Below the pieces are notes generated by a model. The model was not told where the DNA came from. It worked only from the letters and a program-made list of their open reading frames with translations, and did no database searches. The position numbers were made by a program, and so were the translations under genes. Positions 1,852 through 63,040 of a DNA stretch of 64,000 bases are shown one piece after another. Each line of letters opens with the position of its first letter. Positions within the stretch are counted from its first letter, which is position 1. Source of the DNA: Octopus bimaculoides (taxonomy: Eukaryota); contig NC_068984.1 in assembly GCF_001194135.2 (NCBI RefSeq), positions 16,065,389 to 16,129,388 on the forward strand. Direction: 5' to 3'.

Positions 1852-2053
1852 CCTTTTTCTCTTTGTTTATCTTCTCTGAGACCTCTTCATTTACATCCTG
1901 TGTGCTTAAGTCTTCAGTTGGAGGAGGTTTTGTTAAAGCAACCAACTGAAGTGTAATTTCGTCTCCAAGAGTTAGGTCTCTGATTCGTAAGGAATTAATT
2001 TCAGGTGGAATCACAGAACCATACAAAAGACTATTTTTAAACATCTGGTAGCC
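1852..2053 (-). CDS. Exon 22: [67 protein letters not shown] (FN3-6)
   Basis: Acceptor tgtgttttacacag, donor G|gtaaga; 202 nt, phase 0 to 1. The gene continues beyond this point. Confidence 0.92.
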
Positions 2054-5000: not shown

Positions 5001-7948
5001 AGATAAAGATGGAGGTGGTGTGGTGTTAGAGTATTCTCTCAGGACAGAAGAAGGTGAGTACAATTGAGAACATGGACAAAGGAAGGAGCCAGTTTATATA
5101 TTCTTAAAGAATAGAAATTTACCGTAATGACGACACTCTTTTGTTCTGGTATTTCCCAGGCTACATCAATTCCATCTGGAGTCATGCTTTCAAGATACAG
5201 TTTTGGTGATCCAGAAGTTTTCGATGAACAAACAGTAAGAGTATTGGAGGGAAGGCTGTCACTCAATACAAAAATATGTTTGCTCCCTGGTTCAATGTGG
5301 CTTTGACCACAAACTGACTACAACGGACAAACAAATAAACACATGTTCATAAATTACAAGGACTTACAAAATCAAGATTGCTTAAGTAATTAGTTACTTT
5401 CATTAAAAAAGAAAATTAATCTTAGAGATAAATGCTAAAAGGGTTTTTTTAAACCAAATATTTGTCTGTTATTATTCATAGCTTCATCTATTTTGAGTCC
5501 AAAGGTTAAAAATAAATTATTTCATGCTTCTTGAAAGTTTTAAATTCTTATGATATAAACAACATACAATAGAGAAATTCAAAAGAAATGCTTTGGTCCT
5601 ATGGCAAAAAGTCTGTCATATTTATAGAAGATGTATGTTTGGGTTCCACAGACAGCCTCCTACATTTTCTATCCAGTATTTACATGCTATTATTTAAAGA
5701 GGTTGCTCTCAATTGAGGTCCATATAAAACTTCGTTACTTAAATTAATCTGCAATAAATTGGTTATATGTCTACCATACACAAGATATTTTAACAACCTT
5801 TTAATACAATAGCAACATTATTATTTCTAAATCTCTCTTTGAGAGATATTCAGTAACAATTCTCTAAAGTAAAGACTATTTGACAACATAATGGGGCTGT
5901 CCTGGAAGGGATGATTGTTACTGTTGTTTAGCCCAAGGAAACATCGTTTCCAGCTGGCTATATGACACAATATCTGTGTCCTTATATTTTCAAACTGGGA
6001 GTCCAGCCACCCCCATCCAGTACAAAACAACATCTGTGGACTGGTTTCTGGGCTATTGCTCTTTATCAACACAGAGTCACTGTTTTGCTGAATTCTGTTA
6101 AAAAATATAAAGTTTTCAAAGTGACACACAGTCACTGATCTAATAAATAGAAACATTATTGTTTCTAAATCTCTCACAGAGAAATATTCAGTAACAGTTC
6201 TCTAAAGCAAAGACTATTTGCCAACATAATATGGCTGTACTGGAATGGATGATTGTTATTGTTGTTTAGCCCCAGGAAACAATAACAATCGTCCCTTCCA
6301 GGACAGCCACATTATGCTGGCAAATAGGCTTTACCTTTTAATACAATTCTTAATAATATTCAATTATAAAGATATATGACTTTTTTTAAAACAACAAATG
6401 ACATTGATGGGGGCCTATTAAAGTAAAATAGGAACCAAGGGGGTCCATAGATAAAAAATGGTTGAGAAGCACTGATTTAAAGCTTTAGTATTTAGATTTC
6501 TTTATCAAATGTAATGCTTGTTTATATTGTCTTGAATTTATTATATGTTATTTTGTAACTTTGAGAATTCAATGATGAGCTTGTTATTTTTAGAATGGCA
6601 CTGTAGGATAAATGTAAGAGGCTTGATCTGGTCAGTTTGAACATAAAACAGGTAGAATATTTTGGCCAGATATGGCTGGTTTGAATACTAAAGGGTTAAA
6701 GCTTTATCTATTATGAATTCAACAGTTGAAAATGAATTATTTTTTAGTGAGGAGTCGAACATGAATCCAATTTTCTTGCTTGTATTGTGTTAAGCTGCAT
6801 GTACGTTGGTGTGACAAATAACATTCAATCAAAGTTTAGATAACGAGTTTTTATATCACTGTACTTTTACAAAAAGTGCATGTGAAATAGTAAAAGGTGT
6901 ACGAACATAGTTGTTTCATAGCTAGTGAAAATTAGTTGGTTGGTAGTTGGTTGGAGAATAAGTCAGTTGGCATTAATGATAAAAGGTTCATCTTCTGTGA
7001 TTTGTGCTGGAACAGAAGAGAGTAAGGAATGCGCCAGCTACATAATGAGGAAGTTGTAATGGCTAAGAGCAAGGTGAGCCAACTGCTCTGAGAGCCAGGA
7101 GTCAAGAGCTCAGTTTAGTGAGAGTCATGCTGAATAAGGAAAAAGGAAGACTAAATGTCCATCTAGAGTTTATACATTTTTCTGTGTGTCACTCTGAAAA
7201 CTGTATATTTTTGAACAGAATTCAGCAATGCCACCTAGCAAAGCAGCGACTCTGTGTTGATAAAGAGCAATAGCTCAGAAACCGGTCCACAGATGTTGTT
7301 TCGTACTGGATGGGGGGGGGGGCTGGATCGAAAATGCTATGTCACAAAGACTGCTGAGAGTACAGTACCATCAAAGCGCCAACTTCTGACAACAGAACGA
7401 GGAGACATAACTCTGCTCTGTTCCTTTCATTATTATTTAGCCATAGCAATGCTTGCTACACTTTCATGTTTCTCAAAGTTTCTAAATTCTTATGACATAA
7501 GCAACATGTAATTCTCACTGGTGAGAAAAAAGCTTCTAAAATAGAGGAAAAAATTCAAAAAAGATTGTTTTAGTCCAGTGGTAGAACATCTGTTATGTTT
7601 ATAGAAGGTCTGGGTTCACAGGCAGCTTATGATCCCTTCTATCCAAAGGGTTATTAAACCTAGTATTCACATGAGATTATTTACAGTTTTATCTACTTTG
7701 CATTCAACCAGTAAAGAAGATATTAGTTCACTTTACCTTGACATAAACTTTGTAGTTTCTATTGGCAGCAAGTTCTGTTAATGTAAATTGATATCCATTT
7801 TTATCACTATAGCTGTTAGCTTGTATTTCTCCATTTAACTTGTCATTTAAATAGATTCTGTAACGGACAAAATTACAATTTATTTGTTACTAATGTTAGT
7901 ATAAGTATAAAATGAAGAGTAGAGTAAATTCAACTATAAATCATCATT

Positions 7949-8506: not shown

Positions 8507-9543
8507 TCTATAACTATACAATAAAGGCAACAAATATATTATGCATCAGATGGTTTATTAATATCAATAAAGGTAAAAAAATACTATGGGTGGGATTTCA
8601 GATAAAAAAAAATCAACCCTGGTGGAATTTGAACACAGAATGAAAAGACTGATAAAATACTGCAAAGCATTTTACCTGGTGTACTAATGATTGCGCTAAT
8701 GATTCTGCCTCTTTGATGTCTTCATCACACAATTAATATTAAAAATATCGTTGCCAGTGCCACTGAACTGGCTCCTGTGCAGATGGCACATAAAAAACAC
8801 CATTTGAGCATGGCCGTTGCCAGTACTACCTGACTGGCCCTCGTGCCAGTGGCATGTAAAAGCGTCCACTACACTCTCGGAGTGGTTGGCATTAGGAAAG
8901 GCATCCAGCTGTAGAAACTCTGCCAGATAAGACTGGAGCCTGGTGCAGCCATCTGGTTCACCAGTCCTCAGTCAAATCGTCCAACCCATGCCAGCATGAA
9001 AAGCAGACGTTAAATGATGATAATGATGATGATCCACTGATTATTAAAAAAGAAATTAATGAGAACTAAATTCAAAAGTTTATTTTTTCAAATGTACAAT
9101 AATGTTAAAGATTATTTACCTGTACATAGAAATATCTTGATCAGAAGATGTAGGGGGTTTACTCCAGCCAATTATGATGCAACCTGATTTGAAAGATGTC
9201 TGTTCTTCTATAGCTGGTGCCAATGGAGAAGCAGGACAGGAAACATGAACTGGTGAACACTGCTTGCTATTTTCAATATTTTGGTCTGGTACAGCTACAG
9301 CAGTTATTGTTACTGTTGAGCCTTAAACCAAGCAAAATAAAAGACACGGCTATATACAACAATACAGTTCTATATTTAAGAGATGAGGAATTATGTACAT
9401 TATTTACATTATTTACATTTGACGGATATTTGTCCTCATTTTGTTTGTTGTTAACATGTTTCAGCTGATATAGCCTCCAGCCTTTATCAGGTGTCTTGGG
9501 GGAAATTTCGAACCTGGGTTCTCATTCTTAAGGTATTTTTTGA

Positions 9544-10053: not shown

Positions 10054-12144
10054 GTATTTGTGTGTTAGCATGAGAAAGCCTTCTTTCCCTTTGATATTTA
10101 TTTCCAACTGAGTCGTGAGCATAGAATACGAAAATGGTATGTAAAGAAGAGAGGAGAAAAATGTGAAGCATATGTAAAATGTAAACTCCTGGGAATGGAG
10201 TGGAGTGAGGACACATGAAGAAAAAATGCAATTTTGTGTATTTCTTTTGACTAATGAGTAATGTTGCACCTGGTTTGATTTCCTTTTCAATTCTAGTGGC
10301 AGGTGTGTTAATTAGTTGCTCATCACATTGAGAATTATAAAATACTTTGAAACCTGTCAGTTTAAGATCAGGATGGAGCTCTTTTGGTTCTTCAATGCAG
10401 AATGAAACCTAGAAATAAAAAAATTAGAGCAATATAATGACATGTCATCTACATTAGTAAATAATGGTGGAATTATAATATCTTTTCTATATTTCTTCTT
10501 TTCCCTCGTGTCTGACATATGATGAGAGATGAAGATTAAAAGATTAACGAAGAAAGAGAGCCCGGGAGAAGAGTGAGATACAAAGAGTAAGAGCAAATGG
10601 AAACATGGTCAGCATATAAAAATAGACCTATTAAGGTGAAATCATATTCTTTTACTTTTATTCTTTTACTTGTTTCAGTCATTTTGACTGCGGCCATGCT
10701 GGAGCACCACCTTTAGTCGAGCAAATCGAACCCAGGACTTATTCTGTGTAAGCCTAGAACTTATTCTATCATTTTCATTTGCCGAACCGCTAAGTTACGA
10801 GGACGTAAACACACCAGCATTGGTTGTCAAGCGATGTTGGGGGACACACACACAAACATACACACACACATACATATATATAGATATATACGACGTGCTT
10901 CTTTCAGTTTCCGTCTACCAAATCGACTCACAAGGCTTTGGTTGGCCCGAGGCTATAGTAGAAGACACTTGCCCAAGGTGCCACTCAGTGGGACTGAACC
11001 CAGAACCATGTGGTTGGTAAGCAAGCTACTTACCACGCAGCCACTCCTGCACCTATATGTAATTATAATTAAGGGCATAGAAAAATTCTAGCTTATATAC
11101 TGAAAATAGTTAAATTGTCCAACCACTTTAAAAATCCTCATGTGTGTAACTTTGTGATGATTTTTAAAGTGGTTGGATGATGTAGCATCTATTTTCAGCA
11201 TATAGGCTAGAATGTTTCTATGCCCTTAATTATATCATCATCATCATCGTTGTTGTTGTCGTTTTATGTCCTCCTTCCATGCTGGCATGGGTTTAACAGT
11301 TTGACTGAGGGCTGGTGAGCCAGAAGGCTGCACCAAGTTCCAATCCGATCTGACATTGTTTCTACAGCTGGATGCCATTCCTAACACCAACTACTCTGAG
11401 AGTGTAGTGGGTGCTTTTTACGTGCCACCGGCATAAAGGCCAGTCAGGTGACACTGGCAACGATCACATTCAAATGGTACTTTTTACATGCTACAGGTAC
11501 AGGACCAGTGAGCCAGGCTATAATTATATATGTATATATATATATATATGGACATGGACAGCTGTTTAAAGAAGTGGTGATCTCTAACTGTGGAGGGAAC
11601 CTGTGGAAGAGGTAGTCTCGAGAAGACATGGGACAAGGTGGTGAAGCATGATCTTCAAATGCTGGGTCTCACAGAATCAATGACAAGTGACCAAAACCTT
11701 TGGTAATATGCCATGCTTGAGAAGACCTATCAAGCCAAGTGAAATGTAAGTTGTGGCTGATGCTGGTGTCACATAGCTGGCATCCATGCTGGTGGCATGT
11801 AAAAGCACCCTTTGAACGTTGGGCCACATTGAAGTGATGACAGGTGACTGAGACCTTTGGTAATATACTGTGCTTGAGGTGACTCACCAAGCCAAGTGAA
11901 ATTGTAGTTGTGGCCAATGCTGGTGTCACATAACTGGCACCCGTGCCTGTGGCACATAAAAAGCACCCATTACACTCTCAGAGTGGTTGGCATTAGGAAT
12001 GGCTTCCAGCTGTAGAAACCATATCAAATCAGATTGAAACTTAATGCAGCTTTCCAGTTAACCAGTTTCAGTCAAATTGTCTAACCCATGCCAGCATGGA
12101 AAGTGGACGTTAAATAATGATGATGATTATAATTATCACACACA

Positions 12145-12210
<66 letters not shown>

Positions 12211-13969
12211 TATAAACCTGTTACCAGTTCAAATATGTTTGTGATGTATTCACTGTATTTTGTCATGGAGAAAAATTCTCACTGTTGACAAATAGGTGTA
12301 ATAGGTGTACTGCAAGAATTTTTTTCCATGACAAAATATAGTAAATGTTTTTCTGATGAGTTCAAATAAGTCTCAAGCATATTTGAACTGCCATCCTCAA
12401 ACCTGAAATGGCTGAAATTAAACTGCTTGCTCATTAAATGAATATTGTCTTTCAAAATTGAGATTTATAAAATTATTCTCATTCCTCCAGAAAGTATTCA
12501 GCAGAACTATTTGTGATTTGCTGTCAACAATTTCAAAGGACAGTATAATCAATATTTGCATTCTTTCACAGATCCAGAGGCAGAGTAAGCTCTACTTCTT
12601 TGTTCCATTTCATCTGGAAGCTTAGAGACTAAAGTAATGGCTGCCTTACAACAACATAAACAGTTGTTGAATGAGTGCTTCCATGCTCCAGGGGTTTATG
12701 TAACTTTGTGCTCTACATGTCTGAGAAATGACAAACTTGAAGCAACTCATAGTATTCATCAGAAGAAAATATGAGGTGATCTTCAATTGCCATTACAGAC
12801 AAAACTCTTTACCTTGAGTCAGTCACAATCTAGTGATTCAAAAAATACTGCCAGGGAGAATCAAGGGCTCGCCTCCCTAACAAATGCAAGTTGTCATCCA
12901 TTTGCTTTTCCGGCACCTTAGTAGTGCCTTCACAATAATTTATAATAACTTATGTGGCATTCTTTAATGATTTTCATTGTGTGACTCAAACTAGCCAATG
13001 GAAATTAGCTTACTAGAGGCCAATTAGAAACCATCTTTCAAGCTGAATGCAACAAAAGCCTCACTTAATTCAATAAAATAATGACCGTATGAGTTATTAA
13101 CAGCTTATCTATCTGCACATATACCATATAACATATTTGGGGCTTTTCTCTTATATGCAAAACATTAAAAAAGAATTACCGTATATAAATCAACTTTGAA
13201 AGAAGTTAGTGATGGAGGTCCAGGTGGCCCTTTCAGTGAGTAGACTTTCTCAGAAGACTTGATATTTAGATTTTCATCTCCACTTGAATATGTTCCATTG
13301 ACAGAGAAACTAAGGGTGAAATAAAGAGACAGATATTGAGCTATAATATAGGTACAAAGAGGCAGACTCATAATCAATTTTATCAGTGACTCTCAGTCTT
13401 TGATTGATACTTTATTTCATTGACTCTCAAAAGATGAAAAGAAAACTAGACTCTGGTGGAATTTGAACTCAGATTATAAAGAAATATAACAAAAAAATTC
13501 CACAGACTATTTTGCCTGTACAACACCATAGATATATATTATAACACTAACATGTATTATATTTGACTTTTTACTTACCAAATATTTAAATGACTCCCTT
13601 GCAGGTTGTAGACTTAATTTGTCAGTTTAATACTACAACCTGGCTCTAGGACACCTTAGGTAAAGCCCACTTTACTGGAAGCATTCAGGCTAGATCAATG
13701 TTCTGAGGTTAACCTATGAGTCTAGGTTACTATTCCTTCCTTCCAACTCACTGGTACTGGAAACCTTTGGAAAATGCTCAAAGCATTGCTTTCCTTCTGG
13801 CTAAGCAATATGCTTAAGAAGTTCGCTTCCTAACCACATAATCTTAGGTTCAGTCCCACTGCACAGCACCTTGGGAGAATGTCTTTAACTATTCTACTAT
13901 AGCCCTGAACTAATCAAAGCCTTATGAACGAATTTGGTGAATAGACTGAAAGAAACCTTTCAAATAATA

Positions 13970-20273: not shown

Positions 20274-22412
20274 GGCAAGTGCAGACTGTCTTTACCTTCT
20301 CAGATCTCAAGGAGGATGAGGTTTGATCCAGTTTGAACATATATTTGCTGAATCAGAGTTGACTTAAGATTAAACAACCACACCAAAGAAAGAAACAATA
20401 AAAGTAACACTATCAAAAGCAAATACAACACAGAGCCTCAATGTGGTTGTTTGACCTGCTAAAAATAACAGTCAAACCTTTCAAATCAAGCAGGACCTTT
20501 GTTTTAAAAAAATGGAAAGGCACAATGAATAATGTAGTCCTAGATACTCTATATCTGAACAAATAAGGATGATTGCAGCTGCTTTTGAACAGGGCTCAGC
20601 TAGGGGTCTGACTACACTATCAATGATTCCGTTAAAGAAACATTAAAGAAATTAAAAAAAAACTCCTTAAACATTAAGAAAGTTCTTTAAACTTATAGGA
20701 CACCATACCTTTATATGTACACTGTTTTCAATATAAGATTGACTATTTTCTCTTGGTATATTCCCATTTTCAGTTTGACTGTTTCCTTTTGGGACGTTTC
20801 CATTTCCATCTTGATTATTTTCTTTCGGGTTATTTCCATTTTCAGTTTGACTATTTTCTTTAGGTATGTTTCCATTTTCAGATGAACCCTTTGTTGTTCC
20901 TGATGAGTCTTGAGTTGGACTCAAGACAGTTTTCAGCTGTTCATTGAGTGCATCCTCATTAGGAGATTGATCAGCTATTTCAGTGCTGCTTGATTCAGAT
21001 ACTGACAGAGTATCACTCTCGTTATTCGAAGACATTGTTGATGATGTAAATTCTGTTTATTTGAAAGGAAGAAGAAAAAAAAAAGCTTAAATAACAGTGC
21101 TAGAATATGAATAATATGAATTTATATTTTCCCTTTAAAGGGATTATGAGTAGATGACCACACTCAACTTTCAACTGACACTCTATTGGTCATGATGATG
21201 AGGGTTCCAGTTGATCTAATCAACATAACAGCCTGCTTGTGGAATTAGCATGCAAGTGGCTGAGCACTCCACAGACACGTATACCCTTAACGTAGTTCTC
21301 GGGGAGATTCAGTATGATACAGAACGTGACATGGCTGCTCCTTAGAATTCATCATCATCATCATCATCGTTTAACGTCTGCTTTCCATGCTAGCATGGGT
21401 TGGACGATTCGACTGAGGACTGGTGAAACCAGATGGCTACACCAGACTCCAATCTGATTTGGCAGAGTTTCTACAGCTAGATGCCAACCTGCTTGAGACT
21501 GTCCTTATTAAAGTATTCATAATGTAAACTTGACTCCCAATCAAAATCTTGTTACGTCATGCATGATATTAGAAGATTTCATTTGATCAATGCCAACAAC
21601 ATTACATTGCAGATATTTCACAAATCCCTTCAAAATCTCAAATGATTTGAAATTTAATTGCTATGCAAAGACAGTCTAACAATTAGATATGAAAGGGTGA
21701 AAGACAATTCAGTAATTGTTGGAACATCATCATCATCATCATCATTTAATGTCCGCTTTCCATGCTAGCATGGGTTGGACAATTTGACTGGGGACTGGCG
21801 AACCAGATGGCTACACCAGACTCCAATCTGATTTGGCAGAGTTTCTACAGCTGGATGCCCTTCCTAACATCAACCACTCCGAGAGTGTAGTGGGTGTACT
21901 GGCAATGGCCATGCTCAAAATGGTGTATTTTATGTGCCACCCGCACAAGAGCCAGTCCAGGGGCACTGGCAACGATCTCGCTCAAAAGTCCTTACACATG
22001 CTGCGGGCACAAGTGCCAGAAAGGCGACGCTGGGCACAGGTGCCATCATGATTTCGCTTGCCCCAACAGGTCTTCACAAGCTGAGTTTCGTGTCCATTGA
22101 AGGAGACGACGTTGGCATGGGTGCCAGTCGTCGAATTACAAATACAAATCATTTTTGCCAGCTGTGAGGACTGGAGCAACATGAGATACAGTGTCTCACT
22201 CAAGGACACAATGCACTGCTGGGGCTCAAACTCATGACTTTATGATTGTGAGCCAAATACATTAACAACTAGGCCATGCACTTTTACAATTTAGTATTCA
22301 GATTACCAAATTGAATACTAAATATCTTCTGTATGCCATGAGCTTTTGACTTCTCCTCCCCAAAGGGTTTTTTTTTACCCAAAATTTACATGCTATTATT
22401 TATAATTATTCA

Positions 22413-28489: not shown

Positions 28490-28531
<42 letters not shown>

Positions 28532-51084: not shown

Positions 51085-54000
51085 TTAGCATCCATTGTCC
51101 ATGCTGTCATGGGTTGGATGGTTTGACTGGGCTGGAACGCTGAGAAGGCTGCACCAGACTCCAGTCTGATTTGGAATGGTTTCTACAGCTGGATGTGCTT
51201 CCTAACACCAACCATTCCAAGAGTGTAATGGGTGCTGGATGCTTTTTCATATTTTAGCACAAGGCCAGAAACTTTGGGGGAGGGAGTAAGTCTGTTACGT
51301 CAACCCCCAGTACTCAACTGGTTCTTATTTTATTGACCCTCAAAGGATGAAAGGCAAAGCTGACCCCAGCAGCATTTGAACACAGAATGCAAAGTTAGGA
51401 GAAATGCCACTAGGCATTTTTCTTGGTGCAGTAACAATTCTGCTAGTTCGCTGCCTTAGAATAAATATTGGTTTCTAATTCTGGCACAAAGTCAGTAATT
51501 TTATGGGTGGGGGTAAGTTGGTTACATCAACCCCAGAGTACAACTGGTACTTATTTTATCAACCTCAAAATGATGTAAGGCAAAGTCAACCTCGGCCGAA
51601 CATAAAGATGGACAAAATGCTACTAAGCGTTTTGTCAGTATGCTGAAGATTCTGCCAGCTCGTTTGTCTTTGAAAATATCAAAAATATCAATATTAAAGA
51701 TATAGGAATGATCCAGCAAGGTAGCTTTGACTGATGAGACATACAAGAAGGTTGAAATATTATGGTGTCTCAAACAAAACTATACTCTCCACTGAGTTGT
51801 GTGTGTTCCCCCTGCCAAAAAAAAAAAAAATTATCAAGGGTCCTTCATGAGCCAAAAGCTCATAAAGGTGGCTTCCTAGATTCTGTGGCACATAAATTCC
51901 CCAATTGGCTGGGACACTTGTCCATTGCAGGATTACTCATTTTTGCTACCTGAGTGGACTGAAGCAACATAAAATGATGTTTTGTTCAAGACCACAAAGC
52001 TTCACCCAGTCCAGGAATCGAAACCACAATCTTATGATCATGAGTGCAACACTGTAACTAGCAAGCCACGTCATGTGTGTATGAACACACATTGTCCAAA
52101 GTCAAGGTGTTCCCCTCTGACACAAAATATCAATGATCAGAATGTATTAAGACAAGGCGGTGAGCTGGCAGAAACATTAGCACGCCGGGCGAAATGCTGA
52201 GCGTTATTTCGTCTGCCGTTACGTTCTGAGTTCAAATTCCGCCGAGGTCGACTTTGCCTTTCATCCTTTCGGGGTCAATAAATTAAGTGCCAGTTACGCA
52301 CTGGGGTCGATGTAATTGACTTAATCCCTTTGTCTGTCCTTGTTTTTCCCCTCTGTGTTTAGCCCCTTGTCAGCAATAAAGAAATAAAGAATGTATTAAG
52401 ACTGAATAGGTTATGTTATTGCCAGAAAATTAGTGTTTTCAAATTAAGTAATGAAACAAAACTATACTCACCATCGTACTTTTGTTGTATGGATGAGGAT
52501 AAGTGCCATCAAGTGTGTAGTATAGCTTCAAATTATAATCAGCATTGTTGCTCAGAGGATGAGCTAGTTTAATTTTATCTCCAGAACAAAGTTCTTTATC
52601 AGTGAAGTCATCAATAAAATATGCCATTTTTAGTTTAGGAGCTTTTGAAGAAAGAAAATCGAAATGAAGTTCTTGAAGAGTTATAAAATAAATGAAAGAT
52701 TAAACATTTACTTGGTAAGTAAGTTAATTGCATTTTCTTGAATAGACATAAAGAATATGAAACTAGGAGACAGACAGACTTGAAGTGGATAGGATACATC
52801 ATTGATGATTTTGTAAAGAGTGATGAAAGAACTCTGACAAACCTAGCTGACTGATTGACTGACTGAATGATCAAACAACTGACTAGTTAATTGGTTAAAT
52901 GATTAACTAGCTGACTAATAATAATAAAAAGAAGTGAAATAGAACCAGTGTGTGTGTGTTTCTTATTGGCATTATGATCTTCCAAAGATATAACAAAATC
53001 TGCCAATGGCATAGTTGAACTGGTGATAACATTGAATTTATATACATCACTGCTTAGTGCTCCCACCTTGTAATAACAAAATCTGTCTCAACACACAATT
53101 CCACAGTAATAATCTTGTAAAGCAAATACAAGAATAGAAATATTTGCATTAAAATCACCATCTGTGTATCATACTAAATGTATACATACTGTTAGTGGGA
53201 TTTGAACCCATACAGTAAAGCATCTTTTCTGATACCCCAATGATTCAGCCAGTTTATCACCGTCATATGATTTCTAGTTTAAGCACAAAGCTGGCAGTTT
53301 TGAGGGGAGGGGAGGGGAGTAGTCAATTAAATCAACTCCTCTACTTGATTGGAAAATTGCTTTATTTGAACCTAAAGGGATGAAAGACAAATATGAACCC
53401 AGCAGGATTTCAGTTTATAACATGGAAAACCAGAACAAATATAAATTAAGTTGTTTAATGCTTTAACAATTTTGCCACTCTACCACAGAAACAACAACAA
53501 CAACAACAACAACAATAATAATAGTAATAATAATAATAATAGTAGTAGTAGTAGTAATAATAATGAAACTGAAAATAGGATAAAGAAAAGAATGCATGGA
53601 CAATTTCATAGGGATGTTGAAGATAAGACAGACAGAGAAAAAAGATGGCTTTGGATGACTAAAAGTGATTTAAAACCGGAAATGGGAAGTACTAAGAATG
53701 AATTCCATCAAATACAAAATAGGCAACACATCAGAAAGTGATAAGTACAGAATTTGTGGACAAAATGGTGCAACCGTATGGCATAGTCCCATGAAAGGGA
53801 AGAATACTACTGCTATTTAGCCCTAGGAAGCACCCCTTGACAACATACTACCACTTTATCGTGTTACTACTGTATAAATATCTCTGAGAGATTTATTAAT
53901 GTATTATTTCTATTATATTACCAGTCAATGTATGTCACTAGTCCAGAAAGAATATAAGAAACGTCATGACAATATTACAAAGATTGTCCATTGGACAAAC

Positions 54001-54216: not shown

Positions 54217-55162
54217 GAGTAGAGCAAGCACAAAATATGCTGTGCTGGGACAGCTAAGATTTTGAGATTGGTACTGGAGTGTTGAACGTTTTCCCTGCTT
54301 CGGCAAAAGAAACCGGTAAAATGAGTACTAAGCTTACAAAGAATAAGTTCTGGGGTCGATTTGTTCGACTGAAGGCAGTGCTCCAGCATGGCTCCAGTCA
54401 AATGATTGAAACAAGTAAAAGAACAAAGGAATAAAAGAATCAGACAAAATTGTATGAAAAATGATTTTTGGTAATAAATTAAATAAAAATATTTGAACAC
54501 TAATAGGTGAAAAAAGTATTGTTTGTATTTTCAAAGTGGCTAGGATTTATATAGCAAAAGTTGTAATAAGTTAACAATTCCAGTAATAAAAAAAGAAAAA
54601 ATTACCATTTTCAATAACTGTTACACTGCCATAATAATCCAGAGCCCTTTCTGATATGACCGTATGTTCACCGGGATCATAAAAATTGTGGCAGAATTGA
54701 CTGTTACTGATAGCTTTGCCACTGTTGAATGAACGCTTTCCACTGACAATTCCAGATGTTTCCTGAAGAATTAACCATGTAAAATAAAGTTCAGAAGAAC
54801 AAGTGACAAAAAAAAAAAAAGAGATCATTAATTGTACAGGACTACAGAAGAGCAGATTTCTTCTAATACAACCATGGAAGAAGCAATTATGAATTCTGAG
54901 AGTCATTATATCAGATGCACAAACAATTCTGCCAAATTACTACCTTTTCTTTACTACAATAGAACTGATGAGAATTTAAAGAAAATCAAAATTCTGATAG
55001 TCTGGTTAATAATAACCTGATCTCATGAATTTTAGGCCAAATTCCTCCTCTTGGCTGACAAATAGTCTTGTTTTGGCTTTACATGCATTTTTATATATCT
55101 AAAGAAATTTAATTCTAAATAAGAATAAGTATATATAATAAATAAATAATATATATATGTAT

Positions 55163-55490: not shown

Positions 55491-58400
55491 ATATATATAT
55501 ATATATATGTATGTATTTTTTCAATGTGTACAAATAACATAGAAAAAATAAATAAATAGTTACCAGGGTAGCAAAAATTCACTTAAGTACCAAAGATATT
55601 ACAGCCTTACTTAAAGGTAGAAATCTCAGGGTTTAGTGAAATATTTTGGCATTACATAGATAAATTAAGAAATGGTGTTAAACACAGGTGTTATTCAAAT
55701 CTTTATACTTCTGATATATGTTTCATGCACACACACACGCATGCATGAATACATGCACACACATGAATGAATGCGCACACACACATGTGCATGCATGTGC
55801 ACACACTCTCTCTCACACACACACATGCATGAATGCATGCCTGTCTTTGTTTGTCCCCTCTGTGTGTAGCCCCTTGTGGGTAGTAAAGAAATAACACACA
55901 CATGTGCATGCATGAACGTATGTGCACACACATGTGCATGCACATACTCTCTCTCACATGCACACACACTTGCATGAATGCATGCACGCATGCACATGTG
56001 CATGCACGTGTACACACACACTCTCTCACACCCACATACATATGCATGTATGCATGCACACACACATGTGCATGCATGTACACACTCTCTCTCTCACACA
56101 CACACACATATACATATGCATGTACGCATGCACACACACACACACACATGTGCATACATGTACACACACACTCTCTTTCTCTCTCACACACATGCATGAA
56201 TGCATGCACATACACACACACATGTGCATGCATGTGTACACACTCTCTTTCTCACACACACACTCATGCACACATACTCATATAAATATGCACTTCTTTC
56301 TCTCTCCACCCCCCATCTCACTCTCATATCACAACACTTATATGTTATGCTCTAAATATGTAAAATCTCTCTTACTTGTTGCTAAAACAAAGAAATAAAT
56401 GGAAAAAGGTTAAAAGCAATTTCAGTAAACTTTAATCTAGGATATCAAATATTTGTCAACTTACAGCTTCTGAAGAATATGTAACATGTACAATGTTGTG
56501 AGGTTCTGTCCATTTCCATACAACCTGTTGGCCCTGAAATAACGAAAACCAAATATGAAAATATGGATATAGGTGCAGTTATGGCTGTGTGGTAAGAAGC
56601 TTGTTTCTGAAGCATATGGTTTTGGGTTCAGTCCCTCTGTGTAGTACCTTGGGCAAATGTCTTCTACTATATAGCATTGGGCTGACCAAAGCCTTGTGAG
56701 TGGATTTAGATCAGGAAACTGAAAGAAGCCTGTTGTACATATATATCTATACAAGTGTGACTTTGTGTCTGTGTTTGTCTCTGACCACTGCTGACAACTG
56801 GTGTTGGTGTGTTTATGTCTCCCATAAAAAAAAAAAACAAGTAAAAAATAAGTATTGCGGTTGATTCAATTCATTCAAATGAAATTCTTCAAGGTGGTGC
56901 CCTTGTATGGCTGTAATCTAATGAGTGAAACATGTGAAAGATAAAAAGATATAACTTAACCCTTTAGTATTCAAATTGACCATATAAGGCCCAAATATTC
57001 TATCTGTTTTATGTTCAAACTGACCAGACCAGGCTGCTCACAACCATCCTAAAATGTCATTCTAAAAATAAACAATCACATTATTGAAATCTCAAAGCTA
57101 TGAGATAATTTATGATTAACTCAAAACAATATGAGTAAGAGCAATCAGAGAGCACAAACCTCTGCCAAGGCAACACCAACGTTCTCTCAACGATTAGCTG
57201 AAGTTGGTTTTTATAATGAGAATATTGAAATAAACTCAACTGCTCTCACAAACGAGAATACTAAAAATGGAGCTGACCGCTCTCAAAAATTAAGTGAAAA
57301 AAACCCCAGAAAAATAACCCAAAATCCTTGTCTGATACCGGATCAATCCCCAAATCTAATCAGTTTGTGCCAGTCGTGAGGCAAACATCCCTGGAAGTTT
57401 CATCCGAATCTATTCAGTGGTTCTTGAGATATCTTATCCACAGACAAACAAACAAGCAAACACGACTGTAAACAATACTTCTGTCTTCGCTAAGGCGGAT
57501 GTAATAAATAAGCATTACATTCGATGGAGTAATTTGAATGCTAAACAGCTAATACTTATATTTTAGATAAATAACTTTATACTTACTTTTTCCAAAACAA
57601 CACTTTGTGGATGGAATCCCATATTATCCACATACACCACAGTGCTGTCATTGACAGGGTCCACTATGACTGTACTTAATACAGTTTCATTCTCATTGTT
57701 CCCCTGGAGAAAAATAAGGTTGATAATGAATAATCTCTATCAAATAACGGGCGTTTAGGCAAGGTTATGATCTGTACACCGAGGGATGGCAGCCGATCCC
57801 GTAGGCAGATGGATTCACCCCCGCTGGACGCGTGGTTTTGGCCACGAATGTCGAGACCCTACTTGCTCCTTCGCTCAGTTGCTCAAAGTCTTGTAGAAAA
57901 TCGGCAGTGGTGCTGCCCACTATAATAGCCAGAGCATCCTGATGAGCGTGTAGATTCGGGTTGAGTGGCCCCGACCACTATAACACACCGGCGTCTTGGT
58001 ATAGATGACCCTTCTGCTGCGACTACGTTCTCCGGTCATACTGGCGGGGTGCAAAGGATTTATTAAGGATAATTTTAGATTTTAAACATCTTTGCACTTA
58101 AGAGAATCATTGGGTTGGTATTCAACTTTATTTCTTTTTCGACAGCATTAAGCCAGTGAGAGAAATATCTTTTATGGATATGATTATCATACATACAAAC
58201 ATAAAAAAAAAGAATCAAAGGTCCTTCTGAGCTACCAGCTCATAAGGTTGGTTTCCTGGATTCCGTGGTATATGTATCCCCCCTGCCCCACCCAAGACAG
58301 GATGCATGTCCATTGCAGAATTTCTCATTTTGCCAGTTGAGTGAACTAAGGCAACATGAAATGAAGCGTTTTCCCCAAGAACGCAATGCACTGCATAGTC

Positions 58401-62047: not shown

Positions 62048-62084
<37 letters not shown>

Positions 62085-63040
62085 GTAGTTCAGAGGATAT
62101 AATTAAATAAACTCAAGAAGAATCATTGTCTTTGAAATTTTTACCTTTTGTTTTAAGAAAGATTTGGAGGTGAAATGAAACAGGCCAGACTTTTCAAGAA
62201 CTTTTGCTATGCAACGCCTAAAAAAAAAGACAGTGTAGATAAGTTTAACAGTTCACAAAAATAAAAAGTCTATATGGTATAATAAATCAATGTACAGTGA
62301 GTTTTAAAATGTTTATCTTTTTAAAATGTGAGAGTCATGTGAAAAATTGGTTATAAATTGCCCTGGTTTTAACATTTACACTTCTATGCTTGCATGGGAT
62401 ATATGGAATTTGTTGAGGTAGATTTTCTATGGCCAGATGCGCTTCCTGTCACCAACCCTCGTTTGTTTCCAAGCAAAGTATTTTTTTCCCATGGTCAGAC
62501 ATGTTTCTCTGGAAGACTGGAAATGCACAACATCACTTGTGTAACAGTGGCACTTGTTTACAGTTATTGTCAAGGCAAGGAGACACAAACACCCTCCAAA
62601 TGCACACACACACACACACACACACATTAGAGGCTTCTCGTACAGGTTCTGCCTACCAAACATTATTCACAAGGTATTGGTCAACTTGAAACTACAACAG
62701 AAGACGCTGAGTCAAAAAGCCGTTCAATGGGATCCAATCCTAAGCCATAATATTTCTGTCCATAAAGGAATGTAACATACTCAAGGGATACAACTCAGTA
62801 TGGTGAACTTAGACATTCAGTAAATAGAGAGACCAATGATAAAAAAATATGAAAAATGATGCTGTACCGTTTGACAAGTTCCTCATCTTTTGTTTCGGAT
62901 GATATGACTCTTTTTAAAAAATCAACTTCCTGTAGATCATATAATTTGGGGACTTTAAACACCCAACATACAATGTCATTCAAATTAATGACTATTGGGT
63001 CTGGTCTGATGTCCCCGATGTTTACTGATACTTCTTGGAC
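1852..63040 (-). CDS. Spliced gene (22 exons in window, about 1155 aa, incomplete at both ends): 2 cupredoxin-like repeats + CHB_HEX_C/Fn3_assoc-like domain + 6 FN3-like domains
   Basis: All 22 exons have AG/GT boundaries and chain with matching phases (0-2-0-0-0-1-0-2-0-0-0-0-1-1-0-2-2-0-1-2-0-0-1). Summed length is 3466 nt with no stop. Domain motifs are completed across junctions, e.g. GLCPGLAY|NFSV and SVVIT|GYQMF. Confidence 0.9.
2300..2800. mobile_element. Fold-back MITE family 1 (further copies at about 44340-44770 and 52790-53140)
   Basis: Arm gggaggattattatgccaataataaacacatgcactgg... is the reverse complement of ...cagtgcatgtgtttattattggtataatgatcctccc. Confidence 0.75.
5123..5317 (-). 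CDS. Exon 21: [65 protein letters not shown]
   Basis: Acceptor ttgtccgttgtag, donor ACG|gtaaat; 195 nt, phase 0-0. Confidence 0.92.
6487..6698 (-). mobile_element. piggyBac-like non-autonomous element (second copy at about 56957-57125, + strand)
   Basis: Terminus TTAA|CCCTTTAGTATTCAAA is shared by both copies, with internal similarity. Confidence 0.5.
7737..7857 (-). CDS. Exon 20: (R)[40 protein letters not shown] (FN3-5)
   Basis: Acceptor attttgtccgttacag, donor AAG|gtaaag; 121 nt, phase 2 to 0. Confidence 0.92.
9120..9321 (-). CDS. Exon 19: (G)[66 protein letters not shown]
   Basis: Acceptor ttattttgcttggtttaag, donor AG|gtaaat; 202 nt, phase 1 to 2. I-x-I-x-W-x-x-P FN3 motif. Confidence 0.92.
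9395..9793. mobile_element. Head-to-head pair of tRNA-headed, (AAT)n-containing SINEs; the minus copy carries a decayed hammerhead motif
   Basis: + head 9649-9722 has A box TGGCGCAGTGG and B box GTTCGATTCC. The inverted head at 9597-9646 is about 80% identical. Motif GACAC-CTGATAA-AGGCTG..CAGCT-GAAAC lies at 9453-9495 (-). Confidence 0.65.
10270..10408 (-). CDS. Exon 18: [46 protein letters not shown] (FN3-4)
   Basis: Acceptor atttttttatttctag, donor G|gtgcaa; 139 nt, phase 0 to 1. Confidence 0.88.
10655..11050 (-). mobile_element. SINE family A, near full length
   Basis: Reverse complement of the head and tail seen at 27586-28000. Confidence 0.85.
11064..11234. repeat. Palindrome/MITE with about 75-bp arms
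   Basis: tataattaagggcatagaaaaattctagc...tccaaccactttaaaaatc is mirrored by gatttttaaagtggttgga...gctagaatgtttctatgcccttaattata. Confidence 0.8.
11540..12125 (+). mobile_element. RTE LINE 3' end with (GAT)n tail
   Basis: Encodes a degenerate [28 protein letters not shown] segment, followed by the shared tail ending acgttaaa(t)gatgat. Confidence 0.75.
12225..12390. mobile_element. Small MITE
   Basis: TIR cagttcaaatatg / catatttgaactg plus internal inverted arms (tattttgtcatgga). Confidence 0.7.
13180..13309 (-). CDS. Exon 17: (N)[43 protein letters not shown]
   Basis: Acceptor ctttatttcacccttag, donor ACG|gtaatt; 130 nt, phase 2 to 0. PGPP is a typical FN3 start. Confidence 0.9.
15109..15225 (-). 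CDS. Exon 16: (S)[38 protein letters not shown]
   Basis: Acceptor ttttttctttccttttccag, donor AA|gtatgt; 117 nt, phase 2-2. With exon 17 it gives GL-x-PG-x-x-Y-x-F-x-V. Confidence 0.92.
15411..16097. repeat. Two ~97-bp direct repeats (15411-15507, 15999-16097) flanking a degenerate ~42-bp minisatellite (about 7 units, 15697-15970)
   Basis: ctacactggcttttaggagctc...tctcacccacattgtgtct occurs twice; minisatellite units start ccaacctc/ccagcctt/ccaatttc. Confidence 0.7.
16800..17625 (+). mobile_element. RTE LINE 3' fragment with long 3' UTR and (GAT)n tail
   Basis: [39 protein letters not shown] is the typical RTE RT C-terminus. Confidence 0.85.
17499..17869 (+). repeat. Arm 1 of a near-identical inverted duplication (arm 2 is 21481-21847)
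   Basis: About 370 bp including about 245 bp of non-SINE AT-rich flank; by eye about 4 substitutions plus small indels. Confidence 0.92.
19204..19553 (-). CDS. Exon 15: EVSSxx x5 linker then FN3-3 start ([21 protein letters not shown]...)
   Basis: Acceptor cttcaactttttaaag, donor AG|gtaatt; 350 nt, phase 0 to 2. Confidence 0.88.
19683..20275 (+). mobile_element. 3' UTR fragment of an R4/Dong-like LINE embedded in (AAT)n (short second copy at 22484-22590)
   Basis: 20133-20235 matches the tail of the coding fossil at 54035-54140; (AAT)n lies on both sides. Confidence 0.55.
20709..21052 (-). CDS. Exon 14: Ser/Asn/Glu-rich linker with 4 copies of [12 protein letters not shown]-like repeat
   Basis: Strong polypyrimidine acceptor, donor AAG|gtatgg; 344 nt, phase 1 to 0, open frame. 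Confidence 0.88.
21481..21847 (-). repeat. Arm 2 of the inverted duplication
   Basis: Reverse complement of 17499-17869. Confidence 0.92.
23900..24422. repeat. Compound (CA)n/(TA)n microsatellite with a 10-N gap
   Basis: Direct inspection. Confidence 0.95.
24617..24947 (+). mobile_element. Non-autonomous element with subterminal inverted repeats, Helentron/HINE (DINE-1)-like; second copy at 57135-57505
   Basis: The two copies align over about 300 bp. subTIRs cctctgccaagg and gctaaggtggagg / cgctaaggcgga; T/A-rich flanks. Confidence 0.55.
24964..25134 (-). CDS. Exon 13: (N)[56 protein letters not shown]
   Basis: Acceptor tttttgttctgctctag, donor G|gtgagt; 171 nt, phase 1-1. [13 protein letters not shown] parallels [13 protein letters not shown] of FN3-1. 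Confidence 0.88.
25190..25965. repeat. (GAT)n/(GGT)n compound trinucleotide array
   Basis: Direct inspection. Confidence 0.95.
26370..26730 (-). mobile_element. tRNA-headed SINE family C (partial copies at about 18975-19170, 21190-21345, 23470-23650)
   Basis: The minus strand begins gtggaggtgcaatggcccagtggttaggg...ggtttcgattccc, containing Pol III A and B boxes. Confidence 0.8.
26740..27583 (+). mobile_element. DDE transposase 3' fossil, Chapaev3/CMC-like, interrupted by an RTE-tail copy (27085-27290)
   Basis: [33 protein letters not shown]....ISDEQ../RFLQDI with a stop and a frameshift; ends in gttccccagt. Confidence 0.65.
27586..28000 (+). mobile_element. SINE family A, full length
   Basis: ggcgtaggagtggctgtgtagtaag...ccgggttcagtccc head, (TA)(TG) centre and conserved tail. 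Confidence 0.88.
28490..28980 (-). mobile_element. RTE-tail element with (GAT)n
   Basis: Reverse complement of 17170-17625. Confidence 0.85.
29265..29830 (+). mobile_element. Penelope-like element 3' fossil: GIY-YIG endonuclease C-terminus plus pseudo-LTR with a decayed hammerhead motif
   Basis: [13 protein letters not shown]...[18 protein letters not shown]...[26 protein letters not shown]; hammerhead-like motif at 29751-29788. Confidence 0.75.
29935..30330 (-). mobile_element. SINE family A
   Basis: Reverse complement of 27586-28000. Confidence 0.85.
31420..31885 (+). mobile_element. RTE LINE RT C-terminal fossil
   Basis: [28 protein letters not shown], then [21 protein letters not shown]...GRGRTRKTW; in-frame stops. 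Confidence 0.9.
33235..33830. repeat. (CAT)n/(CAC)n compound array
   Basis: Direct inspection. Confidence 0.95.
33980..34076 (-). CDS. Exon 12: [32 protein letters not shown]
   Basis: Acceptor tcttacatttgtag, donor A|gtaagt; 97 nt, phase 0 to 1. Confidence 0.87.
36326..36750 (+). mobile_element. SINE family A
   Basis: Head, microsatellite centre and tail; ends about 25 nt from the exon 11 donor. Confidence 0.85.
36774..36932 (-). CDS. Exon 11: [53 protein letters not shown] (FN3-2)
   Basis: Acceptor tttgtcttttttccag, donor AAG|gtaaaa; 159 nt, phase 0-0. Confidence 0.92.
37050..39078 (-). mobile_element. Degenerate RTE LINE (APE endonuclease + RT N-half), internally deleted
   Basis: [22 protein letters not shown]...[10 protein letters not shown] (APE); [20 protein letters not shown]...NYRGIRLL...QFGF...STTNATF (RT). 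Confidence 0.9.
39775..39927 (-). CDS. Exon 10: [51 protein letters not shown]
   Basis: Acceptor ttgtttgtatttcag, donor ATA|gtaggt; 153 nt. GL-x-x-G-x-x-Y FN3 tyrosine corner. Confidence 0.92.
40395..41085 (-). mobile_element. mariner (Tc1/mariner) transposase fossil, 3' half
   Basis: DEK-x-IYF...[13 protein letters not shown]; LLHHENASA; [16 protein letters not shown] (YSPDL motif); [11 protein letters not shown]...GTYLDE; stops and frameshifts. Confidence 0.88.
41163..41537. mobile_element. Long fold-back element (about 150-bp arms, about 90% complementary)
   Basis: aagtagttgtatgctgtc...gggagacaagcatc is mirrored by gtgcttgtctccc...gacagcatacaactactt. Related pieces occur at 53770-53900 and, more weakly, 5820-6330. 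Confidence 0.9.
41730..42590 (+). mobile_element. Two tandem RTE-tail elements with (GAT)n
   Basis: Shared tail ...ccaacccatg...gacgttaaatgatga occurs twice. Confidence 0.75.
43119..43244 (-). CDS. Exon 9: [42 protein letters not shown] (FN3-1 start)
   Basis: Acceptor ttttatatcaacag (an in-frame ag before 43271 is an alternative), donor AAA|gtgagt; phase 0-0. FN3 L-x-W and GY motifs. Confidence 0.85.
44844..44937 (-). CDS. Exon 8: (Q)[31 protein letters not shown]
   Basis: Acceptor tttaatgttttgcag, donor AAA|gtaagt; 94 nt, phase 2 to 0. Bridges exons 7 and 9. Confidence 0.85.
45440..45925 (-). mobile_element. SINE family A (diverged)
   Basis: Head and tail are recognisable around a (CA)n centre. 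Confidence 0.7.
47775..48222 (-). mobile_element. Two tandem SINE family B copies with (AAC)n spacers
   Basis: Core ggatgaaaggcaaagtcaacctcagtggaatttgaactcagaacg is repeated. Confidence 0.75.
48277..48383 (-). CDS. Exon 7: [35 protein letters not shown]
   Basis: Acceptor tctttctttgtag, donor CA|gtaagt; 107 nt, phase 0 to 2. I-R-x-I-A-x-x-x-G-x-x-x-S-x-V completes the CHB_HEX_C-like domain. Confidence 0.9.
52155..52390 (+). mobile_element. tRNA-headed SINE family B, near intact (other copies at about 3510, 16443, 18126, 35065, 40172, 51255, 60540)
   Basis: ggcggtgagctggcagaaac..gagttcaaattcc head; central gcctttcatcctttcggggtc..taagt.ccag resembles the conserved Nin/Meta-type SINE core (recalled, unverified). 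Confidence 0.85.
52472..52641 (-). CDS. Exon 6: (A)[56 protein letters not shown]
   Basis: Acceptor ttttctttcttcaaaag, donor ATG|gtgagt; 170 nt, phase 1 to 0. YYTLDG-x-x-P is the hallmark of CHB_HEX_C_1/Fn3_assoc. Confidence 0.9.
53560..54215 (+). mobile_element. R4/Dong-like RLE non-LTR retrotransposon 3' fossil within AAT/AAC repeats, interrupted by a fold-back fragment
   Basis: [23 protein letters not shown]; [12 protein letters not shown]; [15 protein letters not shown]. Confidence 0.75.
54606..54762 (-). CDS. Exon 5: [52 protein letters not shown]
   Basis: Acceptor ttaattcttcag, donor G|gtaatt; 157 nt, phase 0 to 1. F-x-SG...F-x-H-x-F-x-x-PG...G-x-V-x-V is the cupredoxin C-half. Confidence 0.92.
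55720..56285. repeat. Complex CA/TG (catgtgcatg) microsatellite containing a SINE B tail fragment
   Basis: Direct inspection. Confidence 0.9.
56465..56533 (-). CDS. Exon 4: [23 protein letters not shown]
   Basis: Acceptor ttttcgttatttcag, donor GCT|gtaagt; 69 nt. G-x-x-V-x-W and PHNI match the plastocyanin-type motif. Confidence 0.92.
56567..56950 (+). mobile_element. SINE family A (diverged)
   Basis: Head begins about 33 nt upstream of the exon 4 acceptor. Confidence 0.7.
57587..57703 (-). CDS. Exon 3: [39 protein letters not shown]
   Basis: Acceptor ttatttttctccag, donor AAA|gtaagt; 117 nt, phase 0-0. Contains the cupredoxin GF-x-P motif. Confidence 0.92.
58470..59230. repeat. (TACA)n/(TA)n arrays around an N gap
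   Basis: Direct inspection. Confidence 0.9.
60772..60975 (-). mobile_element. Old CR1/L2/jockey-type LINE RT C-terminal fragment
   Basis: [26 protein letters not shown]...LY...[11 protein letters not shown] resembles LG.TI..DLSW..HI...AS.KL...LEY.S.IW. Confidence 0.6.
62145..62217 (-). CDS. Exon 2: (R)[24 protein letters not shown]
   Basis: Acceptor gtctttttttttag, donor AAG|gtaaaa; 73 nt, phase 2 to 0. Supplies the G-x-F-x-F strand of a cupredoxin fold. Confidence 0.85.
62868..63040 (-). CDS. Exon 1 (in window): [39 protein letters not shown]...EELVK, N-half of cupredoxin-like repeat 1
   Basis: Acceptor tttttcttcag, donor CG|gtacag; 173 nt, phase 0 to 2. Confidence 0.85.

Follow-up and report, generated by a model that had tools for sequence, protein, structure and literature searches.

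The central part of a conserved gene for a giant, functionally unstudied beta-sandwich protein in Octopus bimaculoides

Results

Gene structure

The DNA analysed here, hereafter the window, is a stretch of 64,000 nucleotides from Octopus bimaculoides (assembly GCF_001194135.2, contig NC_068984.1, positions 16,065,389 to 16,129,388), and between positions 1852 and 63040 of its minus strand lies the central part of one real protein-coding gene, whose product combines cupredoxin-like repeats, a CHB_HEX_C-like domain and FN3 domains. The window has 38% GC, a CpG observed/expected ratio of 0.34 and eight runs of N. The gene reads from high to low coordinates in 22 exons (Table 1), each bordered by AG and GT and all in phase, and the spliced model of 3466 nt reads through 1155 codons with no stop, leaving one base over (phase 1) at the last donor.

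To build the model, stop-free segments of the minus strand were listed, and AG acceptors and GT donors were then scored around those that resembled beta-sandwich sequence. This was done without sight of the exon list in a preliminary description of the locus, which had proposed a chain of 22 in-phase exons free of stops; the rebuilt chain has the same limits and the same exon number, and its length (1155 aa) agrees with the one described. The motifs quoted in that description, PHNI and YYTLDG, were also found on the minus strand where it had placed them, at 56503 (exon 4) and 52522 (exon 6). The signal of the gene is far above chance, because single exons matched orthologues in tblastn with E-values down to 3e-19 and the spliced model matched the Bulinus protein in blastp at 4.7e-55 and 4.5e-81. 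None of the 22 exons overlapped an interspersed repeat, and repeats make up about 30% of the window.

Exons 8 and 12 were obtained by enumerating the in-phase AG...GT exons between their neighbours. Exon 12 was placed at 34076-33980 because model residues 1-546 align continuously with the proteins of Ptychodera and Anneissia; the alternative at 31045-30931 had better splice scores but misfitted both the phase and the orthologue alignment and was ruled out. For exon 6, an acceptor at 52671 was dropped in favour of 52641, as Argonauta reads IIIENAPKLEM. A longer exon 16 with an alternative donor, suggested by the Bulinus residues KYVV, was ruled out, since it would lead to a stop in the following exon. 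Exon 14 is the least certain exon of the model: what speaks for it is an open frame and a fitting phase, and it has no homology support.

All eight runs of N fall inside introns of the model, in seven introns in total (2, 4, 6, 7, 10, 13 and 21). At introns 2, 4, 6, 7, 10 and 21 the residues flanking the junction are contiguous in the orthologues of Argonauta, Elysia or Bulinus (e.g., SSEA/ETSGIV in the window and SLEAETFGIV in Argonauta, KSTM/VYDDE and ESTMMYDDE, SVVIT/GYQMF and AYISGYQML in Bulinus), and therefore no coding exon is hidden in the gaps of these six introns. A hidden exon is possible in the gap of intron 13, since this intron lies in a linker that is not conserved.

Table 1. 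Exons of the gene, assembly gaps and other features of the window. Positions count from the first letter of the window. tblastn matches are given with their E-values under protein ids (P0001, Argonauta; P0005, Ptychodera; P0006, Bulinus; P0007, Anneissia; P0010, Intoshia; P0158, Diadema); a slash marks a splice junction.
Feature	Position	Strand	Length (nt)	Content	Matches and splice sites
Exon 1	62868..63040	minus	173	First half of cupredoxin-like repeat A	P0001 residues 480-538, 6e-15; Elysia and Mytilus match too; acceptor ttcttcag/GTC, donor acg/gtacag
Exon 2	62145..62217	minus	73	Second half of repeat A	P0001 1.6e-4; P0003 4e-4; in phase with exon 1
Exon 3	57587..57703	minus	117	Start of cupredoxin-like repeat B (GFHPQ strand)	P0001 residues 559-599, 1.2e-11; donor AAA/GTAAGT
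Exon 4	56465..56533	minus	69	Repeat B motif with PHNI; keeps the first copper-ligand His	P0001 2.5e-6
Exon 5	54606..54762	minus	157	End of repeat B (FNSGK...PGEHTVISE...GSVTVIEN); Cys, His and Met copper ligands missing	P0001 residues 623-675, 2.9e-19
Exon 6	52472..52641	minus	170	First half of CHB_HEX_C/Fn3_assoc-like sandwich	tblastn 2e-16
Exon 7	48277..48383	minus	107	Second half of CHB_HEX_C-like sandwich	P0001 residues 727-767, 5e-11
Exon 8	44844..44937	minus	94	Short linker	P0001 residues 767-799, 8.6e-4; best in-phase exon between 7 and 9
Exon 9	43119..43244	minus	126	First half of FN3-1 (WKWWSCEP...GYK)	WKWWSCEP resembles Elysia WDWWGCRP and Mytilus WTWWDCVP
Exon 10	39775..39927	minus	153	Second half of FN3-1	P0003 1.5e-6; P0006 6e-5
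Exon 11	36774..36932	minus	159	First half of FN3-2	P0002 6.7e-4; P0006 3.4e-4
Exon 12	33980..34076	minus	97	Second half of FN3-2	One of two best in-phase candidates
Exon 13	24964..25134	minus	171	End of FN3-2, conserved acidic/aromatic motif, start of linker	Covered by the alignment block of residues 1-546; donor CAG/GTGAGT scores 9.0
Exon 14	20709..21052	minus	344	Ser/Asn/Glu-rich disordered linker	129-codon open frame and fitting phase only
Exon 15	19204..19553	minus	350	KEVSSV tandem repeats, then start of FN3-3	3' part aligns with Bulinus from residue 1571; junction NINSNL/SYECN resembles Bulinus NINSDISYECN
Exon 16	15109..15225	minus	117	Middle of FN3-3	P0006 residues 1591-1637, 1.6e-8
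Exon 17	13180..13309	minus	130	End of FN3-3, start of FN3-4 (GPPGPP)	In phase; inside the block of residues 767-1132 collinear with P0006
Exon 18	10270..10408	minus	139	Middle of FN3-4	In phase
Exon 19	9120..9321	minus	202	End of FN3-4, start of FN3-5	P0006 residues 1721-1779, 1.2e-8
Exon 20	7737..7857	minus	121	Middle of FN3-5	P0006 residues 1794-1835, 9e-7
Exon 21	5123..5317	minus	195	End of FN3-5, start of FN3-6	P0006 from residue 1836, 1.9e-12
Exon 22	1852..2053	minus	202	Rest of FN3-6	P0006 residues 1898-1945, 1.1e-13, 60% identity; phase-1 donor AGG/GTAAGA
N runs	58941-59070, 59563-59894			Intron 2	
N run	55207-55305			Intron 4	
N run	48722-49645			Intron 6	
N run	46087-46371			Intron 7	
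N run	39345-39390			Intron 10	
N run	24370-24379			Intron 13	
N run	3914-3923			Intron 21	
Exon-like segment	30931-31045	minus		Intron 12; 38-codon open frame	Near-perfect splice signals tag/AAA...CAG/GTAAGT
Coding tandem repeat	19380-19553	minus		5' part of exon 15; 18-nt unit, KEVSSV about five times in the disordered linker	
Transposase fragment	40846-41040	minus		Intron 9; mariner/Tc1-type DDE transposase	Pfam Transposase_1, 55.7 bits, E = 4.8e-15
Non-LTR retrotransposon remnant	~37074-39184	minus		Intron 10; same orientation as the gene	Open reading frame 37794-37303, weak RVT_1 match, 16.9 bits, E = 0.0056
Interspersed repeats	e.g. 3515-4146, 8751-9033, 28501-28869, 42248-42588, 63174-63822			44 intervals	

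Domain content

The first five exons code for two cupredoxin-like repeats, A (exons 1-2) and B (exons 3-5). In an alignment of repeat B from 13 family members, with the window as first sequence, F22, P24, W39, H43, N44, F66, S68 and S91 were invariant. The profile made from repeat B matched plastocyanin (1m9w, E = 3.5e-5; 1j5c), amicyanin (1id2, 2.4e-3) and other cupredoxins in the PDB. When its copper site was compared with that of plastocyanin in the HMMER alignment, the first ligand His (in HNIV) was kept, the Cys was replaced by an invariant Ser, the second His was deleted and the Met was variable. Three of the four copper ligands are thus lost, the complete type-1 set His...Cys-x(n)-His-x(n)-Met is not present, and with Cys, the second His and Met gone no type-1 copper site can form. 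Within the repeat, conservation is highest in the former copper-site region (HN, FNSG and the invariant Ser).

On its own the window scored 19.0 bits with Pfam Copper-bind, under the cut-off of 21.2, and the Argonauta orthologue passed with both Cupredoxin_1 (33.7 bits) and Copper-bind (29.2 bits). Repeat A, the sixth of about seven cupredoxin-like repeats in the family (the exon before it is beyond the window), has no Pfam match of its own. In a profile-profile comparison with hhalign it matched repeat B at 90% (E = 1.6e-6), and control comparisons with FN3 and CHB profiles stayed below 1%.

The fold was tested on the Argonauta orthologue. An AlphaFold (AF2) model of the 335-aa Argonauta segment orthologous to exons 1-8, made with 18 homologous segments, reached a pLDDT of 78.5 and a pTM of 0.75; a model of the 804-aa Argonauta protein with three sequences had a pLDDT of 41 and was unusable. 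The top 50 Foldseek matches of the segment in the PDB were all multi-cupredoxin proteins, with probabilities of 0.99-1.00 and E-values down to 4e-9, and they included copper nitrite reductases (NirK 6hbe, 4e-9), two-domain laccases and factors V and VIII. Their TM-scores were low (~0.2) because the relative orientations of the domains differ. A direct sequence search of the PDB with the Elysia protein gave no match. Repeats A and B belong to the cupredoxin superfamily and, judging from the model of the orthologue, would adopt its Greek-key sandwich.

Exons 6-7 code for a sandwich of the CHB_HEX_C/Fn3_assoc type. In the window it remained just under the Pfam cut-offs (Fn3_assoc 22.0 bits against 23, E = 1.7e-4; CHB_HEX_C_1 17.5 bits against 22), and orthologues were above them (37.6/33.6 bits in Ptychodera, 31.7/30.5 in Elysia, 23.3/24.7 in Anneissia), so that the membership of the window domain in these families is suggested by transitive homology. 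A glycoside hydrolase domain, the usual partner of these families, was found by Pfam neither in the window model nor in the full-length homologues scanned.

The rest of the model, apart from the short linker of exon 8, is made up of FN3 domains, and a disordered linker of roughly 200 aa separates FN3-1 and FN3-2 from FN3-3 to FN3-6. The whole model scored 69.4 bits with Pfam fn3 (cut-off 25). By unit, FN3-5 passed (33.5 bits), FN3-1 (18.3 bits, E = 0.0028), FN3-3 (20.0 bits) and FN3-6 (16.5 bits) were below the cut-off, and FN3-2 and FN3-4 were not detected by this model. In profile-profile comparisons, however, FN3-2 and FN3-4 matched FN3-5 and FN3-6 at 96.7-97.5% (FN3-2 against FN3-5, 97.5%), and profiles built from orthologues related all six units; some of the FN3 alignments contain paralogous rows, which inflates the scores of FN3-1, FN3-5 and FN3-6. 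FN3-4 also matched P0005 (4.8e-8) and P0006 (3.5e-6). The three kinds of domain named in the preliminary description, cupredoxin repeats without copper, a CHB_HEX_C-like domain and six FN3 domains, are all supported by these comparisons, the CHB_HEX_C-like domain by way of its orthologues.

Homologues and the extent of the gene

A word-indexed search with the full 1155-aa model found three proteins: the 804-aa Argonauta hians "uncharacterized protein LOC115211041 isoform X1" (P0001; 66% identity over exons 1-8), a 1347-aa hypothetical protein of Elysia marginata and an 1807-aa protein of Mytilus coruscus. The identity was 66% for the octopod Argonauta and 32-38% for the other two molluscs. The same kind of search with a rough 275-aa N-terminal concatenation gave no match. 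An exhaustive HMMER search with the Argonauta protein gave 167 matches at E <= 1e-3, among them the proteins of Bulinus truncatus (KAH9503746.1, P0006; 2961 aa, partial; 30-39% identity), Ptychodera flava (XP_070557721.1, P0005; 3697 aa), Anneissia japonica (XP_033114658.1, P0007; 3241 aa), Diadema setosum (XP_072180602.1, P0158; 4042 aa) and Intoshia linei (OAF69324.1, P0010; 3004 aa). Other long collinear homologues came from Macrostomum lignano (1269 aa), Adineta (1092 aa), the choanoflagellate Didymoeca costata (1646 aa) and Patella (1089 aa), and shorter fragments from Hydra vulgaris and the sponge Sycon ciliatum. A further search, made with a profile of nine sequences, added only Solemya velum (1276 aa).

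The family is thus spread over a choanoflagellate, a sponge, Hydra, flatworms, rotifers, orthonectids, molluscs, echinoderms and a hemichordate. The combination of domains is conserved across Lophotrochozoa and Ambulacraria; Hydra, the sponge and the choanoflagellate have partial relatives. The long homologues of Bulinus, Ptychodera, Anneissia and Diadema share one Pfam set: Cupredoxin_1 and/or Copper-bind, Fn3_assoc and many fn3 matches, with CHB_HEX_C_1 in three of these four species. Among the matches that could be named there was no protein of a vertebrate, arthropod or nematode, which is no proof of absence. All homologues carry names such as "uncharacterized", "hypothetical" or a domain label, and a literature search on the family, locus tags included, found nothing. 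The earlier statement that no named animal gene matches this protein agrees with these results, as there was no full-length match to a characterised gene; the supposed novelty of the domain combination does not, for it is already in the databases and widely found in predicted genes of invertebrates. The octopus gene adds a new and apparently unannotated member to a family known from database records but functionally unstudied.

The order of the domains could be followed over most of the model. Residues 1-546 align with residues 453-975 of Bulinus (4.7e-55), 554-1111 of Ptychodera (1e-62), 537-1087 of Anneissia and 559-1094 of Diadema. Residues ~750-1132 align with 1571-1945 of Bulinus (4.5e-81), 1665-2048 of Ptychodera (6e-45), 1378-1766 of Anneissia and 2057-2432 of Diadema, and exons 16 and 19-22 matched Bulinus separately and in the correct order. 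The model is collinear over both blocks with single proteins in five species (Bulinus, Ptychodera, Anneissia, Diadema and Intoshia), and therefore a single gene is the best reading. The intervening linker (residues 547-749, exons 13-15) is rich in Ser, Glu, Val and Asn, and the relatives have a longer one.

The gene extends beyond the window at both ends. In the Argonauta protein, ~480 residues of cupredoxin-like repeats precede the residue that matches exon 1, and by this comparison ~480 aa of such repeats are expected upstream of position 64000. No upstream exon was found in 63041-64000, which is an interspersed repeat with only repeat-derived frames, and no credible downstream exon in 1-1851, where again only repeat-derived frames occur. 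Since exon 22 ends at a phase-1 donor, the gene runs past the window; the Bulinus protein continues for ~1000 residues of FN3 domains past the matched part, and ~1000 aa or more of FN3 domains probably lie below position 1. The window is roughly the middle third of a very large gene. The protein of more than 1150 aa put forward in the preliminary description stands as far as its 1155 codons go, but these would be only the middle part of a product of roughly 3000 aa or more.

The missing ends can be seen in the relatives. Their N-termini are MGTGASKD (Ptychodera), MGTGASRE (Anneissia), MGSGASRE (Diadema), MGAGASAE (Bulinus), MGAGASVE (Patella), MGSGSSRQ (choanoflagellate) and MGSAPSQE (Macrostomum), and the MGxGAS start is conserved from the choanoflagellate to echinoderms. 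The consensus for N-myristoylation is M-G-x-x-x-S/T, which these starts fit. Elysia and Mytilus carry MGxGAS internally, suggesting that their annotated N-terminal extensions are wrong. A hydropathy scan detected no transmembrane-type hydrophobic segment in the model or in eight homologues, and the absence of a signal peptide or transmembrane segment, previously noted for the window, holds for the full-length relatives too. At the other end, the proteins of Ptychodera, Anneissia, Diadema and Intoshia share the motifs ...ILFWTKWCLAS... and ...ELFG-x-x-GVPT.... Thioredoxin-family matches in this region were below the Pfam cut-off (20.7 of 27 bits; Thioredoxin_8, 5.5e-4). As far as the names in the records show, this thioredoxin-fold-like domain with its CxxS-type FWTKWCLAS motif is unannotated. 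No catalytic, kinase, SH3 or motor domain was found in the homologues scanned by Pfam.

Other sequence in the window

The exon-like segment in intron 12 (Table 1) could be an alternative exon, a poison exon or a chance occurrence, and the copy number of the KEVSSV repeat in exon 15 may be polymorphic. The transposase in intron 9 is a dead copy, because the neighbouring frames are interrupted. In the retrotransposon remnant of intron 10, the frames upstream of the RVT_1 match look endonuclease-like by eye only. A SINE-like interspersed family numbers up to 16 copies, found in either orientation, and ~30% of the window matches another part of it. Many long (CA)n, (TA)n and trinucleotide runs give rise to spurious long open reading frames; those on the plus strand were ruled out as genes, being low-complexity sequence or transposon remnants. 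No RNA gene was found in the window with Rfam.

Discussion

We have given exon coordinates, strand and phases for a long, gap-ridden locus whose assembly gaps leave the frame unbroken. As to what the gene does, it seems to us fairly probable that the window holds the central part of an old, conserved gene of an animal family and that the product is a cytoplasmic scaffold tethered to the membrane. The full protein would begin with MGxGAS and run through about seven copper-less tandem cupredoxin-like repeats, a CHB_HEX_C/Fn3_assoc domain, two FN3 domains, a variable disordered linker and a long FN3 array, and in several species it would end in a weak thioredoxin-like domain; the share of the window would be the last two cupredoxin-like repeats, the CHB_HEX_C-like domain, FN3-1 and FN3-2, the linker and FN3-3 to FN3-6. 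One can picture an N-terminal myristate holding a long, rod-like scaffold at the membrane, with the beta-sandwich modules serving as units for protein binding or as spacers, rather than a copper redox protein or a secreted adhesion molecule. The preliminary description had likewise suggested a large uncharacterised beta-sandwich scaffold protein; three domain types and the lack of a named match support it, and the scaffold role in it is inferred.

Several points weigh against this picture. The scaffold role is deduced from domain content and from a lack of signatures for catalysis or transport. Both gene ends being outside the window, the myristoylation motif and the thioredoxin-like domain are projected from other species, and the thioredoxin-like match is below the Pfam cut-offs. 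The sequences of most relatives are automatic gene predictions, and the splice junctions of our model are predictions too. Exon 14 and the exact structure of the linker lack homology support. In addition, the conservation of the HN/FNSG/Ser region could mean that ligand binding was retained, rather than pure structure.

This last point can be taken further, as the cupredoxin-like domains may still bind a ligand or metal and, together with the C-terminal thioredoxin-like domain, play a redox or sensing role instead of that of a passive scaffold. Repeat B has an invariant first ligand His with an equally invariant Asn beside it, and the FNSG loop and the Ser that replaces Cys do not vary either; by eye, an HN-type motif recurs in several other repeats of the family, and the FWTKWCLAS (CxxS-type) and GVPT motifs at the C-termini of homologues are typical of thioredoxin folds. 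However, the Cys thiolate required for a type-1 copper site is absent, the second His is deleted and the thioredoxin score is below its cut-off. In plastocyanins the Asn next to the ligand His is structural, and the HN motif is therefore perhaps kept for folding alone. We regard such a redox or sensing role as unlikely. A bolder idea seems to us equally doubtful, namely that the family is an ancient, pre-metazoan and undescribed class of N-myristoylated giant cytoplasmic proteins in which degenerate cupredoxin domains preserve the HN/FNSG/Ser patch as a new site for a ligand or partner and the protein acts jointly with a monothiol thioredoxin-like domain at the C-terminus. If true, such a protein might, in ciliated or collar cells, tether the membrane to the cytoskeleton or serve as a ruler between them.

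That the protein is instead secreted or exposed at the cell surface, as an adhesion or matrix protein, appears improbable. FN3 arrays are typical of extracellular proteins, and the homologues give Pfam side-matches to FN3 models of the DSCAM and Dep-1 types; CHB_HEX_C and Fn3_assoc, for their part, occur mostly on bacterial secreted glycosidases. But neither the model nor the eight homologues have a signal peptide or a transmembrane-like segment, the full-length relatives start with polar MGxGAS sequences, and the best alternative FN3 model is Ig_RIMBP2, which comes from a cytoplasmic protein. Cytoplasmic FN3 proteins such as titin and RIM-BP are well known.

It is quite improbable that two neighbouring genes were fused in the model, with exons 1-13 (cupredoxin, CHB_HEX_C and two FN3 domains) in one, exons 15-22 (FN3) in the other and exon 14 as a spurious bridge. 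Besides the weakness of exon 14, the predictions of Elysia (1347 aa), Solemya (1276 aa) and Patella (1089 aa) end after FN3-2, and that of Argonauta ends even before it. However, in five independent long predictions a single protein contains the two blocks in this order, exons 13, 14 and 15 have compatible phases, and short predictions end in read-through junk (...GPTVRKSII in Argonauta, ...HHHHVFFFFL in Elysia), which marks them as truncated models and not as proteins with genuine ends. A decaying pseudogene or a chance chain of open frames is very improbable: the splice junctions are predicted and the protein of the window itself was not found in the protein collection searched, but 22 exons with canonical splice sites give 1155 codons without a stop or frameshift, the conserved residues of the family are retained and none of the repeats filling the introns reaches into an exon.

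A scaffold on the cytoplasmic side of the membrane thus remains our preferred reading. The giant protein is conserved over a wide range of species and retained even in the very reduced genome of the orthonectid Intoshia, suggesting a function worth finding. The association of copper-less, presumably cytoplasmic tandem cupredoxin-like repeats with a bacterial-type CHB_HEX_C sandwich and a long FN3 array is unusual in an animal protein.

Each part of the protein has its counterpart among known systems. With plastocyanin and amicyanin (PDB 1m9w, 1j5c and 1id2; PF00127, PF13473) the repeats share the Greek-key sandwich and the motifs GF-x-P, W-x-W, HNI(V) and F-x-x-PG-x-Y, whereas the family has about seven tandem copies in a giant protein of cytoplasmic type and not a small periplasmic or lumenal electron carrier. 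With CHB_HEX_C_1/Fn3_assoc (GH29D-like; PF13290, PF13287) the IYYT-x-DGS-x-P motif and the length agree. RIM-binding proteins and titin/obscurin likewise have intracellular arrays of FN3 type, and Ig_RIMBP2 is the best alternative model for several FN3 units of the homologues; in contrast to them, the family has no SH3, kinase or Ig domains, and the likeness is one of single FN3 folds and not orthology. As the SH3 search in the model and in the homologues scanned was negative, the protein does not qualify as a member of the RIM-binding protein family. The LOC115211041-like orthologues have the same domain order and are collinear over both conserved blocks, with a linker of roughly 300-960 aa compared with ~200 aa in the window; the match with them names the gene without explaining it.

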